From the NCBI GenBank assembly GCA_965112735.1, contig OZ218950.1, positions 930,001 to 994,000 on the forward strand: a stretch of DNA of 64,000 nucleotides, in the 5' to 3' direction. The notes below the pieces were generated by a model that saw only the letters and a list, made by a program, of their open reading frames with translations, had not been told where the DNA came from and did no database searches. This DNA comes from Phaeosaccion multiseriatum. Taxonomy: Eukaryota > Protista > Ochrophyta, other classes. This document shows positions 54,701 to 64,000 of this stretch, piece by piece; the stretch's first letter is position 1; every line of letters begins with the position of its first letter. The position numbers were made by a program, and so were the translations under genes.

Positions 54701-57227
54701 GACACGGCTTCCTTGGTGGAGATGAGGCCCTCCTCGACCATGTCACATGCCATTCGGACCGCTCCCTGGGGGCATGATATCATGATGCATATGCGACAGG
54801 GGGTTTTGCGACAGCGGATGGAACGACACGTCTCGTTAGCTTATGCACGCCGCGCATGCACACATGCATTGCATTCACGCAGTTGCATGAGGCTACCTCT
54901 ACCCCCCTCCTCGGCGTGATGCTTCGGTTCCTTCCTTCCTTCCTTCCTTCCTTCCTTCCTTCCTTCCTTTTGCTCTTAATCTTACCTGGGCGGTGCGCTT
55001 TCCGTTGCGGCACTGCAGCATGAAGAGTTTGCTGTTCTCGATGGTGAACTCCAGATCCTGCATGTCTCGGTAGTGCAGTTCCAGCTTTTGAGAGAATCGT
55101 GGGGGCGTATGGGGAGGGAGGAAGGGAGGGGGGTAAGGCATTGCGAGTGAGTAGGCAGCGAATCCGAGCCACTTAGAGAGATGTACACACAGACAAAAGA
55201 GAGGGAGAGAGAGCACTGACCTTCCTCTGGTAGCCGTCGAGCTCCTCGTAAATGTCGGGCCAGATGCGCTGCAGCTCTGAGAGGGGCTTAGGGGTGCGGA
55301 TGCCTGCCACCACGTCCTCTCCCTCTGCGTTCTCCAGGAACTCCCCGAAGAAGACCTATGCGACGTCGACATTTGTTGCAGCAGGATAGAGGCACATCGG
55401 CAGATAGACAAGAGGCAGAGGGAAGATGAGGCGAACGCGTGGTCCCACCACACGCACAGACAAGGCAGACAGACTCTTCCAACAACCCCAAAACTCACAT
55501 TCTCTCCCGTGGCAGGGTTCCTCGTAAAGGCCACCCCTGTGCCGCTCTCCTCATTCAAGTTGCCAAAGACCATGCTCTGTACATTGACGGCGGTGCCCCA
55601 GCTCTCGGGGATGTTGTTGTAGGCTCGGTAGCGCACCGCACGGGCATTGTACCAGCTGCGAAAGACGGCCTCGATGGACATCCACAGCTGCTCGAACGGG
55701 TTCTCGGGGACGTTGGGGTTGATCTGTCGGAAGGAGGCAAGCAGCTCTTCGAGATTCTCGGCGGTGAGGGAGGTATCGTCTTCGACGCCCTCGCGTTCCT
55801 TCAGCTCGGAGATGGCCTGTGATGGAGGGTGGGGTGACGGGGCAGGGCAAGGTGGGGGCAGGCGAGAGTGAGGGCAGGACAGGGCAGGGGCAGAGAAGGG
55901 CAGAGTGTAGGCAGAGCACCGTATCGAGAAGGGTGGAGGTAAGAAGGAAGAGTAGACAAGGCATGACGCAGCCTGCCCTGGGCAGTCGGGCGGGCGGCAG
56001 TAGAGACGTTGCATGGGTCAAGGGCGCGCAGGGTTTCTGACGGGCAATTTGCGTGTCACACCTTTTCGAAGAGCGCTCCGTCGATGCCCATGACCACATT
56101 GGAGAACATCTGGATGAAGCGCCTGTGATAGAGGCGGAGATAGGCAGAGAGAGGGAGGCAGGTGGGCGGGTGTCGGCATGTTGGGGGACGACGGGCGGTA
56201 TGGAAGGAGGGGGAGGGGGATGGCGTACCTGTGCGTGTCGAACGCCCATCTGGCATTTCCCGTGCGCTGAATCATGGCGTTGCGAATGTCGTCGTTCAGT
56301 CCAAGATTCAAGACAGTGTCCATCATCTGATTCGGCATAGCGAGCGCGTGTGAGACAGGGGGAGTGGGAAAGTGAGAGGGAGAGAGAGTGAGTGAGTGAG
56401 TGAATGAGTCGAAGTGAGTAAGGGAGGGAGGGACGGGGAGTGAAAAAAAAGAGGGAGTGAGTGAGGAAGGGAGCAGAAGGCCAGGCTTGGGGTGGAACCA
56501 AGGCCCCAGGGGCTAGTGTGACTTACTCCGGGCATGCTGGCGGGGGCTCCGCTGCGAACGGAGAGGAGCAAGGGGTCGGGGTCGTGAGGCACGCCAAAGT
56601 GCTTACACATCTCCAGCTCCACTTGATGCAGGGCAGTCTTGATGGACTTGCGCAGCTCCGTGGGCAGCTCTTTCGTCTCGAAGAAGTCCTTGCAGCACTG
56701 TGGTCACGATGAGCAAGGAAACGCACAAGATTCAAGAGTAGATGGGGACCCAAGGATTAGAGGGTAGGGTGGGGGGGAACAAACTTCAACAATGAAGAGA
56801 AGAATAAACAAACCTGCGTGGAGATAACGAAGCCCGCTGGAACCGGCAAGCCCAGATTGGTCATCTCGCAGAGATTGGCTCCCTTGCCTCCGAGGAGCAT
56901 CTTCAGGTCCTTGCTCCCCTCCTTGAAAAGGAAGACCTGCTTCCCTTCTTCCACGCTGGGTGTGGCTTCATCGTGTTCTGTAGCTGCGGGAGAACAGGGT
57001 AAACGGGAGAGCAAGCCAAGTCAGAGCAAGCTCAGTTTGGCGTTGGCGCATTGGTCCCACAGGTCCCACACTTGAAGAAGAGCAAGACCCGTTCAGGTCC
57101 GGGAGAAAAAAGTCTTGCCTTGTTGAGTCTTGTGATGAGGCGTCTCGTGCAAGTGCTCCTTCTCGCGGGAGGCGTGGTCGCTGTCATCTTGAGCAACGCT
57201 GAAGCGGCGGTGCAGTATCTTCATCAT
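51780..57227 (-). CDS. PPDK: Pyruvate, phosphate dikinase, multi-exon
   Basis: [27 protein letters not shown]|[40 protein letters not shown] (phospho-His), [51 protein letters not shown]. Confidence 0.97.
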
Positions 57228-59064: not shown

Positions 59065-59600
59065 TGTGTGAGGCAAGGCAGTGGCACCCCTTCGCAACCC
59101 TGCTCATTGCAGCTGTCGAACAGCCTAAAAAGTGAGAAAGAAGTGATACATGTGGAGAGGAGAAGGTGCAGGTGTATATTGACGTTGCTAATGCCTTAGA
59201 GTACCTTCCTGACTACCTTGCCCCTCCGACCCTGTGCTCCAACGCCGTAGACGCTCCTAACCCTCCCTCAAACTCCCTCCATGCCACTTCAGGCATATCG
59301 GCGTGTCCGCGTTGACCACGCCTTGAAGTCAACGAAAATAAAAGTAAAGTCTCGGCCGGGGGAAATGGCCGGAACGATGTCCGGAACCTGTTCGCTGCAT
59401 CCGAGGCATTACATCCATCAATTGCAGCAGCATCGCCCTCCTCACTAAAGAAGCGACGGCCTCCAGTCACCTTGGCATTCTGGGGAGGCCATCATTCAAG
59501 AACCGTGGAGCAGCAGGCGCTAGGTTTCTTGCCTCTGTGAATAAGGAACGAGCGAAGAAAAAGGAACAGGGAGAAGAGAGGGGGGGTAGGAAGGGGAGAA

Positions 59601-62600
59601 ATGACATCCCGGGACGTGTTGGTGTCGCTGTTTAATTGCACGGGAGGAGCTCGATGGAACAAGCACAGCGGATGGGACGAATTGGGCACCATTACACCGG
59701 GCAATCATCGACATCATTTGTATGGGGTGAATAAGAAGGGGAGGGAGGGAGTGGGGGGGTGCTATTTAGAAAATGTTACAAGCGTAGTCGAGCTCTATCT
59801 ACAATGGAATGGACTAGAAGGTGAGAGACGTGCTTGTCCTTCACGGTCCTGGCTGATGGGAGTCTAAAGAGACTGCTGCTGCCCTTGTCCACACACAGGC
59901 ACGATACCGGCCGAGCTCGGCGGATTACAAGCACTGACGGTGCTTCACCTTGATGGCAACAAGTTGACAGGTGGGTTACAGGCATGATGCCATCCACATC
60001 TCGTCCCTTCTCCTCGCATGTCCACAGTGCTGAGGGGTTTTTAAGACGTGTTGCTGCTGCCCTTGTCCACACACAGGCACGATACCGGCCGAGCTTGGCC
60101 GATTACAAGCACTGACGACGCTTTGGCTTGGTGGCAACAAGTTGACAGGTGGGTTACAGGCATGATGCCACCCACACCTCGTCCCTTCTCCTCGCGTGTT
60201 CACAGTCCTGAGGGGCTTTTTATGACGTGTTGCTGCTGCTGCCTTTGTCCACACACAGGCACGATACCGGCCGAGCTTGGCCGATTACAAGCACTGACGA
60301 CGCTTTGGCTTGGTGGCAACAAGTTGACAGGTGGGTTACAGGCATGATGCCATCCACACCTCGTCCCTTCTCCTCGCGTGTTCACAGTGCTGAGGGGCGT
60401 CTTAAGACGTGTTGCTGCTGCCCTTGTCCACACACAGGCACGATACCGGCCGAGCTTGGCGGATTACATTCACTGATGGAGCTTGACCTTAATCACAACA
60501 AATTGACAGGTGGGTTTTGACAGACATGATGCCATCCACACCTCGTCCCTTCTCCTCGCGTGTTCACAGTGCTGAGGGGCTTTTTAAGACGTGTTGCTGC
60601 TGCTGCCCTTGTCCACACACAGGCACGATACCGGCCGAGCTTGGCGGATTACATTCACTGATGGAGCTTGACCTTAATCACAACAAATTGACAGGTGGGT
60701 TTTGACAGACATGATGCCATCCACACCTCGTCCCTTCTCCTCGCGTGTTCACAGTGCTGAGGGGCTTTTTAAGACGTGTTGCTGCTGCTGCCCTTGTCCA
60801 CACAAAGGCACGATACCGGCCGAGCTTGGCGGATTACAAGCACTGACGGTGCTTTGCCTTTCTGACAACAAGCTGACAGGTGGGTTTTTTTAGGGCATGA
60901 TGCCATCCACACCTCGTCCCTTCTCCTCGCGTGTTCACAGTGCTGAGGGGCTTTTTAAGACGTGTTGCTGCTGCCCTTGTCCACACACAGGCACGATACC
61001 GGCTGAGCTTGGCCGATTACAAGCACTGACGGAGCTTCACCTTAATGACAACAAGTTGACAGGTGGATTACAGGCATGATGCCATCCACACCTCGTCCCT
61101 TCTCCTCGCGTGTTCACAGTCCTGAGGGGCTTCTTAAGACGTGTTGCTGCCTCCCTTGTCCACACGCAGACACGATACCGGCCGAGCTTGGCGGATTACA
61201 AGCACTGACGGTGCTTAGTCTCCACAGCAACGAGTTGACAGGTGGGTTACAGGCATGATGCCATCCACACCTCGTCCCTTCTCCTCGCGTGTTCACAGTC
61301 CTGAGGGGCTTCTTAAGACGTGTTGCTGCTTCCCTTGTCCACACGCAGACACGATACCGGCCGAGCTTGGCGGATTACAAGAACTGACGGTGCTTAGTCT
61401 CCACAGCAACGAGTTGACAGGTGGGTTACAGGCATGATGCCATCCACACCTCGTCCCTTCTCCTCGCGTGTTCACAGTCCTGAGGGGCTTCTTAAGACAT
61501 GTTGCTGCTGCCCTTGTCCACACACAGGCACGATACCGGCTGAGCTTGGCCGATTACAAGCACTGACGGAGCTTCACCTTAATGACAACAAGTTGACAGG
61601 TGGATTACAGGCATGATGCCATCCACACCTCGTCCCTTCTCCTCGCGTGTTCACAGTCCTGAGGGGCTTCTTAAGACGTGTTGCTGCTGCCCTTGTCCAC
61701 ACACAGGCACGATACCGGCCGAGCTTGGCGGATTACAAGAACTGACGGTGCTTAGTCTCCACAGCAACGAGTTGACAGGTGGGTTACAGGCATGATGCCA
61801 TCCACACCTCGTCCCTTCTCTTCGCGTGTTCACAGTCCTGAGGGGCTTTTTAAGACGTGTTGGTGCTGTCCTTGTCCACACACAGGAACGATACCGGCCG
61901 AGCTTGGCGGATTACAAGCACTGACGGTGCTTCGGCTTGATGGTAACAAGTTGACAGGTGGGTTTTTACAGGCATGATGCCATCCACACCTCGTCCCTTC
62001 TCCTCGCGTGTTCACAGTGCTGAGGGGCTTTTTAAGAATTATTGCTGCTGCCCTTGTCCACACACAGGCACGATACCGGCCGAGCTTGGCGGATTACAAG
62101 AACTGACGGTGCTTAGTCTCCACAGCAACGAGTTGACAGGTGGGTTACAGGCATGATGCCATCCACACCTCGTCCCTTCTCTTCGCGTGTTCACAGTCCT
62201 GAGGGGCTTTTTAAGACGTGTTGGTGCTGTCCTTGTCCACACACAGGCACGATACCGGCCGAGCTTGGCGGATTACAAGCACTGACGACCCTTAGCCTTT
62301 TTGGCAACGAGTTGACAGGTGGGTTTTTACAGGCATGATGCCATCCACAGCTCGTCCCTTCTCCTCCCGAGTTCACAGTGCTGAGGGGCGTCTTAAGACG
62401 TGTTGCTGCTGCCCTTGTCCACACACAGGCACGATACCGGCCGAGCTTGGCGGATTACAAGCACTGACGATCCTTAGCCTTTATGGCAACGAGTTGACAG
62501 GTGGGTTTTTACAGGCATGATGCCATCCACAGCTCGTCCCTTCTCCTCCCGAGTTCACAGTGCTGAGGGGCTTTCTTAAGAGGTGTTGCTGCTGTCCTTG

Positions 62601-64000
62601 TCCACACACAGGCACGATACCGGCCGAGCTTGGCGGATTACAAGCACTGACGGTGCTTTGCCTTAATGGCAACGAGCTGACAGGTGGGTTACAGGCATGA
62701 TGCCATCCACACCTTGTCCCTTCTCCTCGCGTGCTCACAGTCCTGAGGGGCTTCTTAAGACGTGTTGCTGCTGCCCTTGTCCACACACAGGCACGATACC
62801 GGCCGAGCTTGGCGGATTACAAGCACTGACGATCCTTAGCCTTTATGGCAACGAGTTGACAGGTGGGTTTTTACAGGCATGATGCCATCCACAGCTCGTC
62901 CCTTCTCCTCCCGAGTTCACAGTGCTGAGGGGCTTTCTTAAGAGGTGTTGCTGCTGTCCTTGTCCACACACAGGCACGATACCGGCCGAGCTTGGTGCGG
63001 TGCTCTAACCCCCCCCCCCCACTCCTGCCCCTGTCTGCTCCTCCCCCCTCAGGCAGCATTCCTGCGGAGCTTGGTGAGGTCCACAACCTTCAGTACCTGA
63101 CGCTCGAAGGCAACCAACTCAGAGGCACGATTCCTGTGGAGCTTGGGTCTCTACCCAGACTAAGTTACGCCTGTTTTACTCCCGGGAACCCTGATCTCCA
63201 CGGTAAGCCCTTCCAGCTGGTCCGAAGCCTGCTCTCAGCTGTTTTGCTTGCTTGAATGTCTATTCTCGTCCTCCATAATCCATGGGATTCGACTGTACTT
63301 GCGGTTAAGCAAGCCACGAGTGACCTCCCCTGCGCTCGAGGAGTAGCGAGGAGGAGAGGAGACCCCGCTCTGTCCTGCCTTGCTGTGTAGTAGGTGTAGC
63401 ATTGGTTGGCGTGACTGACTCTCTCTGACGCGCCGATCTCTCTTCTATGCGCGGTCCGCAGGCAACCCCGGTAGGCTACAAGACCGGGACAAAGTGCAGA
63501 TTTGGCAGCGAGACATTCCGCTGCTGACCGAGAGAGATATAGCCCGCTACGAGCTGCAGACTGAAAGGGCCTCCTTCATCACGCTCAAGGCCGAGCTTGA
63601 GCAGGCCAGACGAGACACAGAGTCTCTGCTGGAGGAGGCACAAAGAGCGTCGCTGTCTTCCGGGGTGGGCATGCTGCTGGCCGTTACGGACGCTGTAGCG
63701 AGCACCAGAGGCCATAAGCAGAAGGAGCACAGCTCTGAGGTGCAAGAGCAGCATCAGAGAGAGGGTGTTGAGGAAAGGGCCCAACTTCCAACAGCCTCCT
63801 GGAGGGGTCTACTCAAGGCGATTGAGCTCATGTCCAAAGGCGAAGCGACGCAGGACAATGGCACAATCGGGACAGAAGCTCTGGCTGAGATGGTGCAGGA
63901 GGAAAGGCGGGCAAGTGGGCACTGGGACTCTCTCAAGATGCATCAGAACATACTGAGGGAGTGGAGCCAGTCTGTGTCGGGGGAGGCTCGGGCGGAAGAG
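59601..64000 (+). CDS. Leucine-rich-repeat protein: N-cap exon 59601-59820, 17 single-LRR 72-nt exons, possible 21-nt exon 62974-62994, exon 63053-63202, and helical C-terminal exon 63462 to window end (3' partial)
   Basis: N-cap MTSRDVLVSLFNCTGGARWNKHSGWD...VVELYLQWNGLEG. Repeats GTIPAELGGLQALTxLxLxxNxLT. All introns are phase-1 GT-AG. The last exon is open to 64000 (GNPGRLQDRDKVQIWQRD...). Confidence 0.92.
59899..62994 (+). repeat. Tandem array of 17 exon+intron units (178-185 bp) plus one truncated unit
   Basis: Exon starts: 59899, 60077, 60259, 60438, 60623, 60808, 60991, 61170, 61349, 61528, 61707, 61886, 62068, 62247, 62429, 62612, 62791, (62974). Each full exon is 72 nt. The introns are 106-113 nt and near-identical (gtgggttacaggcatgatgccatccacacctcgtcccttctcctcgcgtgttcacag...ccttgtccacacacag). 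Confidence 0.97.

Follow-up and report, generated by a model that had tools for sequence, protein, structure and literature searches.

Genes built from repeated cassettes raise the question of how the cassettes come to differ: by recombination and selection in the germline, or by rearrangement or alternative splicing within the individual. We addressed this question for a gene near the right-hand end of a 64,000-nucleotide (nt) stretch of the Phaeosaccion multiseriatum genome (contig OZ218950.1, positions 930,001 to 994,000 of the forward strand). This whole stretch is referred to below as the window, and all coordinates are window coordinates. The gene encodes leucine-rich repeats (LRRs), and its exons and introns recur together in a tandem array. 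The locus is probably the 5' part of a gene of the kind described in brown algae as carrying 'type I LRR exons', with a young array that evolves in the germline and with diversifying selection on five residues of the concave face.

A tandem array of single-repeat exons

Tandem Repeats Finder (TRF) reports one tandem array at this locus, with a period of 179, 17.3 copies, 91% matches and 1% indels (score 4792). When the array was parsed against the sequence, 17 of 17 exons were exactly 72 nt long, each with AG before it and GT after it. All 17 are in phase 1-1, beginning with the last two bases of a glycine codon and ending with the first base of the next. The introns between them measure, in order, 106, 110, 107, 113, 113, 111, 107 (five in succession), 110, 107, 110, 111 and 107 nt, and a further 111 nt separate exon 17 from a truncated 18th unit. 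A first-pass annotation made from the letters alone had described 17 exons of 72 nt, phase 1-1, with introns of 106-113 nt; TRF and the parsing both bear this out. Its boundaries, 59899-62994, are right: they span LRR exon 1 through to the truncated 18th unit. Its proposal that exons can be skipped, duplicated or swapped without disturbing the frame likewise holds, as every exon is 72 nt long and phase 1-1.

Each exon encodes one 24-residue LRR of the form G-T-I-P-A-E-L-G-x-L-x-x-L-x-x-L-x-L-x-x-N-x-L-T. The register GxxPxxLxxxxxLxxLxLxxNxLx fits all 17 peptides, two of which have aspartate for the first glycine. Mean pairwise identity is 91.6% among the introns, with gaps counted as mismatches, and 87.2% among the exons. 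A 47-nt intron core occurs 17 times at no more than 3 mismatches, versus 0 times in 100 shuffles. Nearly all of the differences in intron length (106-113 nt) come from a (TGC)3-4 microsatellite and from a T3 indel after the 5' splice site. The microsatellite lies in the 3' part of the intron, at 60052-60064 and at the equivalent positions of each intron.

Variation is concentrated on the concave face

Divergence between units is distributed very unevenly along the cassette. Mean pairwise p-distance reaches 0.44 at codons 15, 17, 19, 20 and 22, which are positions x3, x5, x7, x8 and x10 of LxxLxLxxNxL on the concave beta-strand face. The other 57 exon bases give 0.046, framework codons 0.056 at their third positions, and the introns 0.060. 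The five concave-face codons are ~7 times more divergent between units than either the introns or the silent framework sites. Replacement changes cluster on the ligand face, a pattern classically taken to mark diversifying selection in LRR receptors. Elsewhere in the exon, 11 of 57 framework sites vary, versus 29 of 107 intron sites, and the framework ratio of nonsynonymous to synonymous differences (pN/pS) is 0.47. These figures suggest that the framework is under mild purifying selection and is slightly more constrained than the introns.

The introns are as similar to one another as are silent exon sites, which argues that the whole unit is young or recently exchanged and that the introns are not specially conserved. 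The array offers a clean internal rate comparison in this respect, and the similarity of its introns reflects youth, not function. In the earlier proposal that the intron itself is the homogenized repeat unit, 'homogenized' is therefore to be read as young or recently exchanged, not as constrained. The youth of the whole unit accounts for the likeness of the introns, which that proposal had singled out as unusual, and exon-plus-intron LRR units that evolve by unequal crossing over have been published for Tetrahymena.

Recent duplication and exchange among units

The array holds four exact duplicates of 188 to 243 nt, displaced by one to three units (Table 1). Mosaic ancestry was indicated by a PHI-type pairwise-incompatibility permutation test on 37 informative sites (p=0.001). 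Exon and intron affinities are discordant; exons 2 and 3, for example, are identical and their introns are different. Neighboring units are also more alike, divergence outside the hypervariable patch being greater the farther apart two units lie in the array (Mantel r=0.22, p=0.015). Together, the exact duplicates, the mosaicism and the similarity of neighbors fit repeated out-of-register recombination, conversion or slippage in the germline. All three observations agree with the suggestion in the first-pass annotation that the locus is a substrate for unequal exchange.

A mechanism can be proposed on this basis. In each unit, the intron and the 42 nt that open the exon would together supply ~150 nt of near-identity flanking a hypervariable patch of ~25 nt. 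Whole repeats would then be duplicated, deleted and re-ordered through homologous recombination out of register, through gene conversion or through slippage at replication. Because every exon is 72 nt long and phase 1-1, every recombination product would stay in frame, and diversifying selection on x3, x5, x7, x8 and x10 would drive the repeats apart.

The mosaic signal and the exon-intron discordance are also consistent with concerted evolution, in which ancient patches are held apart by selection, conversion homogenizes introns and framework, and low intron divergence gives no date. Unit pairs with 2.6-3.2% divergence in the flanks show 24-40% divergence in the patch, and the Nei-Gojobori proportion of synonymous differences (pS) in the hypervariable codons is high (0.51), as this history would predict. 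However, an old patch should also have diverged silently at the invariant Leu16 and Asn21 codons, and their silent sites are the same in 17 of 17 units; Leu18 has only two states. The four exact duplicates moreover include the patches, which indicates real recent duplication. We regard concerted evolution of ancient patches as possible but unlikely, and a young array under diversifying selection as the better account of the locus.

Gene model and sequencing runs

The exons of the array can be joined to a first coding exon on one side and to two further exons on the other (Table 1). The resulting spliced model is 2133 nt long, comprises 711 codons, is free of stops and continues past the end of the window; all 19 of its introns are GT-AG. 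An in-frame stop at 59538 lies upstream of the ATG at 59601, and retention of any array intron leads to a stop within 4-7 codons. The truncated 18th unit most likely sits inside the last array intron (62863-63052, 190 nt). Judged from its sequence, the N-terminus appears to have no obvious signal peptide, and the product is probably a cytosolic LRR protein. Neither strand of the 64-kb window contains a further LRR exon. In the 180 residues that follow the LRRs, no P-loop and no Pfam family were detected, and an exhaustive phmmer search of 1.8 billion representatives with this region returned only two unrelated repetitive proteins. We infer that the gene is expressed, that its concave face binds a ligand and that it has a role in recognition or immunity.

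Table 1 Features of the LRR gene and its array (window coordinates).
Feature	Position	Strand	Details
First coding exon, 220 nt	59601-59820	+	ATG and LRR N-terminal cap; ends in phase 1; GTGAGA donor
First intron, 78 nt	59821-59898	+	Last 25 nt are the start of the tandem array
Tandem array of 179-bp exon+intron units	59874-62995	+	TRF; intron core count
LRR exon 1	59899-59970	+	Variable residues V,H,D,G,K
LRR exon 2	60077-60148	+	T,W,G,G,K; identical to exon 3
LRR exon 3	60259-60330	+	T,W,G,G,K; identical to exon 2
LRR exon 4	60438-60509	+	E,D,N,H,K; identical to exon 5
LRR exon 5	60623-60694	+	E,D,N,H,K; identical to exon 4
LRR exon 6	60808-60879	+	V,C,S,D,K
LRR exon 7	60991-61062	+	E,H,N,D,K; identical to exon 10
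LRR exon 8	61170-61241	+	V,S,H,S,E; first residue D, not G
LRR exon 9	61349-61420	+	V,S,H,S,E; first residue D
LRR exon 10	61528-61599	+	E,H,N,D,K; identical to exon 7
LRR exon 11	61707-61778	+	V,S,H,S,E; identical to exon 13
LRR exon 12	61886-61957	+	V,R,D,G,K
LRR exon 13	62068-62139	+	V,S,H,S,E; identical to exon 11
LRR exon 14	62247-62318	+	T,S,F,G,E
LRR exon 15	62429-62500	+	I,S,Y,G,E; identical to exon 17
LRR exon 16	62612-62683	+	V,C,N,G,E
LRR exon 17	62791-62862	+	I,S,Y,G,E; identical to exon 15
Truncated 18th unit	62974-62995	+	First 22 nt of an LRR exon; right edge of array; exact repeat 62753-62995 ends there
Two-LRR exon, 150 nt	63053-63202	+	Two more divergent LRRs; phase 1-1
Next exon	63462-64000	+	180 codons open to window end; non-LRR, charged or coiled-coil-like; based on open frame and phase-compatible acceptor only
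Exact 243-nt duplicate	62391-62633 = 62753-62995	+	Offset 362 (2 units)
Exact 207-nt duplicate	60413-60619 = 60598-60804	+	Offset 185 (1 unit)
Exact 206-nt duplicate	61681-61886 = 62042-62247	+	Offset 361 (2 units)
Exact 188-nt duplicate	60963-61150 = 61500-61687	+	Offset 537 (3 units)

Searches for sequencing runs with the locus gave four runs of one sample (X1-X4) and one other run; the four, in the form of short unitigs, were aligned to 59300-64000. Some unitigs contain apparent GT..AG joints; these carry 16 replaced letters, derive from paralogous units and do not represent splicing. An apparent deletion of 371 nt at 59865/60237 arose because the aligner misplaced a first-intron variant, allelic or paralogous, that has 3 changes. 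The unitigs of X1-X4 also include a variant copy with an array-family intron directly before the second LRR of the exon at 63053-63202. Judging from these sequences, there is a paralogous array elsewhere in the genome, with one intron lost or gained. At positions 63479-63515, all four runs differ from the window.

Several points weigh against the interpretation of the locus as a young, functional array diversified by selection in the germline. In all four runs, the unitigs are DNA-like: they extend through introns and across exon-intron borders, and genuine splice joints are absent. They are too short to confirm the number and order of the units, and the array count rests on the assembly. The mosaic test is weak once the hypervariable patch is left out (p=0.089). 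Part of the sevenfold excess at the concave-face codons may be attributable to old cassettes with flanks homogenized by conversion, not to fast substitution, and the patch contains only three silent sites, too few to decide between the two. The 180 visible residues after the LRRs have neither a family nor relatives, and the sole basis of the suggested immune function is analogy.

Some of these points could be accommodated if the array were a young expansion that is non-functional or unexpressed (a pseudogene or a useless array), or if its unit number were an artefact of assembly: the DNA-like runs provide no evidence of expression, the C-terminal part stands without relatives, the unitigs do not span the array, and brown-algal families of the same one-LRR-per-exon kind include many pseudogenes. 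Nevertheless, canonical splice sites flank each of the 17 intact exons, the frame of 711 codons is open, the framework is less variable than the introns, and unit-specific 31-mers of the array are present in the DNA runs (share of words 0.5-0.6). We therefore consider a non-functional or artefactual array very unlikely.

Intron features and diversity within the individual

A more far-reaching alternative is that the locus generates a repertoire within the individual, through somatic recombination of cassettes or regulated combinatorial skipping of exons, so that many receptor variants arise from one locus. Here the first-pass annotation restates the hypothesis of Zambounis et al. (2012); of its interpretation, the germline part is the one that the data support. 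The symmetric phase 1-1 exons would keep any skip or swap in frame, the long identical tracts are good substrates for recombination, and Ectocarpus ROCO genes are reported to use their LRR exons alternatively (Teng et al. 2024, PMC11378527). A candidate hairpin over each 5' splice site could, in addition, modulate splicing.

This possible hairpin would bury the 5' splice site at the start of every array intron (59971-59997 in the first). GUGGGU (nt 1-6) pairs with AUCCAC (nt 22-27), and GGCA/UGCC form an inner stem. The outer stem has only two substitutions, G5>A (introns 7 and 10) and U23>C (intron 2); they fall on one and the same base pair, and each converts G.U to a Watson-Crick pair. The hairpin might tune exon usage. 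Folding of whole introns, on the other hand, was no better than that of shuffled sequences (z from -1.25 to +1.1), so that no significant intron structure speaks for a repertoire.

Other functions were considered for the introns. The array introns hold C-box-like and CUGA motifs, and AUGAUGC together with CUGA raised the possibility of an intronic small nucleolar RNA (snoRNA). This candidate was rejected, as no Rfam match came near the gathering score and no terminal stem was present; the best snoRNA match in Rfam lies on the opposite strand and scores 18 bits, versus 40 needed. A V(D)J-like signal was likewise rejected: CACAGTG is found in 9 of 17 introns but is accompanied by no nonamer at 12 or 23 nt, and was treated as coincidence. 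A scan for inverted repeats that might act as Dscam-like docking and selector pairs gave no matches beyond low-complexity ones, G/C-rich or CAG/CTG in composition. Within the first exon, a G-rich tract (59743-59759) is 88% complementary over 17 nt to a C-rich tract at 63014-63030, and the two bracket the array. Both tracts are of low complexity, and their complementarity is probably due to chance.

Introns of ~107 nt favor intron definition. Skipping of array exons should therefore be rare, and less likely than in brown-algal genes with long introns. Unlike genes of the variable lymphocyte receptor (VLR) type, the germline gene is complete and in frame, and it shows no docking or selector complementarity beyond low-complexity tracts. 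As germline processes account for all of the observed diversity, a repertoire produced from this locus within the individual is very unlikely. Mitotic rearrangement of the array or combinatorial splicing within one individual, by which clonal lineages would come to carry different receptor variants, is likewise very unlikely; if true, it would amount to the 'adaptive-like' immunity that was put forward for brown algae in 2012 and has never been demonstrated. The whole array of 17 repeats measures 3.1 kb, however, so that one polymerase chain reaction (PCR) amplicon or one accurate long read spans it in DNA or complementary DNA. At this size, receptor diversity of somatic or splicing origin, a long-standing question in this lineage, becomes cheap to test, and the main use of the locus is as a compact test case for that unproven hypothesis.

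Comparison with known systems

The 'type I LRR exon' of Ectocarpus is a 72-nt exon coding for GxxPxxLxxxxxLxxLxLxxNxLx, and the proteins concerned combine an LRRNT_2-like cap with as many as 18 LRRs in tandem; these genes were reported to show diversifying selection and shuffling of exons, and somatic recombination was proposed (Zambounis et al. 2012, PMC3341825). In four brown algae, nt 3-71 of the exon code for 23 residues, and four positively selected sites lie on the concave face (Teng et al. 2024, PMC11378527). The Phaeosaccion locus resembles the type I genes of Ectocarpus, Saccharina and others in its 72-nt exon, its register and the 23 whole codons of nt 3-71, in its LRRNT-like cap, apparent lack of a signal peptide and repeat number (up to ~18 in those genes), and in the hypervariable x positions of the concave face and recent intragenic rearrangement. 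In exon length, register and hypervariable face, it is a member of the type I LRR-exon class. Its kinship with the one-LRR-per-72-nt-exon genes of Ectocarpus had been recognized at first reading, and exon length, register and cap are indeed the same. The design has thus already been published for candidate immune receptors of brown algae, and the locus is no new kind of system.

The array differs from the brown-algal type I genes in being a clean head-to-tail tandem with near-identical introns of 106-113 nt, whereas in the corresponding genes of Ectocarpus and kelps the introns are long and contain decoy exons. Inactivated or inverted LRR exons within introns are frequent, although not universal, in Ectocarpus (Zambounis et al. 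2012, PMC3341825). None was found on either strand of the window, where the 22-nt remnant at 62974-62995 is the only trace of this kind; rearrangement is evident instead from the duplicates and the mosaicism. Intron homogeneity, unequal crossing over and gene conversion are absent from both Zambounis et al. (2012, PMC3341825) and Teng et al. (2024, PMC11378527). As for the LRR-ROCO GTPases, a ROC-COR domain is not visible within the window; a linker precedes ROC in Ectocarpus ROCOs, and the gene leaves the window after 180 post-LRR residues.

A second published parallel is provided by the LRR arrays of Tetrahymena, which have 90-bp exons and are attributed to a clonal origin followed by successive rounds of expansion, together with unequal crossing over (Xiong et al. 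2019, PMC6564038). Both systems consist of tandem exon-plus-intron units with a fixed exon length and a single intron phase. The ciliate arrays differ in their 90-bp exon, phase 2, other LRR type, host and association with a LINE-like element, and the comparison is one of architecture.

Three further systems share parts of the design. The germline VLR gene of lampreys and hagfish is incomplete and is completed somatically from flanking cassettes. It resembles the Phaeosaccion gene in having LRR cassettes with variable concave-face residues, and the analogy has been invoked for brown algae. In contrast, the germline gene in the window is in frame and spliceable as predicted, and no donor cassettes lie elsewhere in the 64 kb. 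In the Dscam clusters of arthropods, mutually exclusive splicing is guided by pairings between docking and selector RNA sequences. These clusters likewise comprise tandemly duplicated, in-frame exchangeable exons in a recognition molecule, but in the window gene, where low-complexity tracts give the only complementarity of that type, all exons are expected to be included together. The kringle IV-2 repeat of human LPA is also an in-frame unit of exon(s) and intron(s), and it varies by germline unequal recombination. Its unit is of kilobase size, its fold is unrelated, and it has no hypervariable binding patch.

Metagenome contigs were searched with both the intron core and a profile of the LRR peptides. 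The intron core gave 0 matches, and the peptide profile identified 19 loci (L001-L019), essentially all of them intronless and bacterial-looking. These loci carry the repeat GxIPxxLGxLxxLxxLxLxxNxLx, 54-75% identical to the LRRs of the window, and in nearly all of them the repeats are contiguous, spaced at 72 nt in one frame. One locus, L019 (1949-2311), shares with the window gene a motif of the N-terminal cap, A-L-x-A-L-Y-N-A-T-G-G...W. The occurrence of the same repeat in bacterial-type loci without introns suggests that the cassette architecture is a eukaryotic addition.

Other features of the window

Compared with bacterial and brown-algal caps, the cap exon contains an extra G-rich stretch of ~14 codons (59729-59770) between G-V-N-K-K-G and V-V-E-L, which may be an insertion or an unrecognized feature. 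Upstream of the LRR gene, an open reading frame on the minus strand (54899-56014) encodes a PPDK_N domain (PF01326, E=5.6e-26). Its identity to pyruvate phosphate dikinases is 50-60%, and on this similarity it is a predicted exon of a neighboring dikinase gene.

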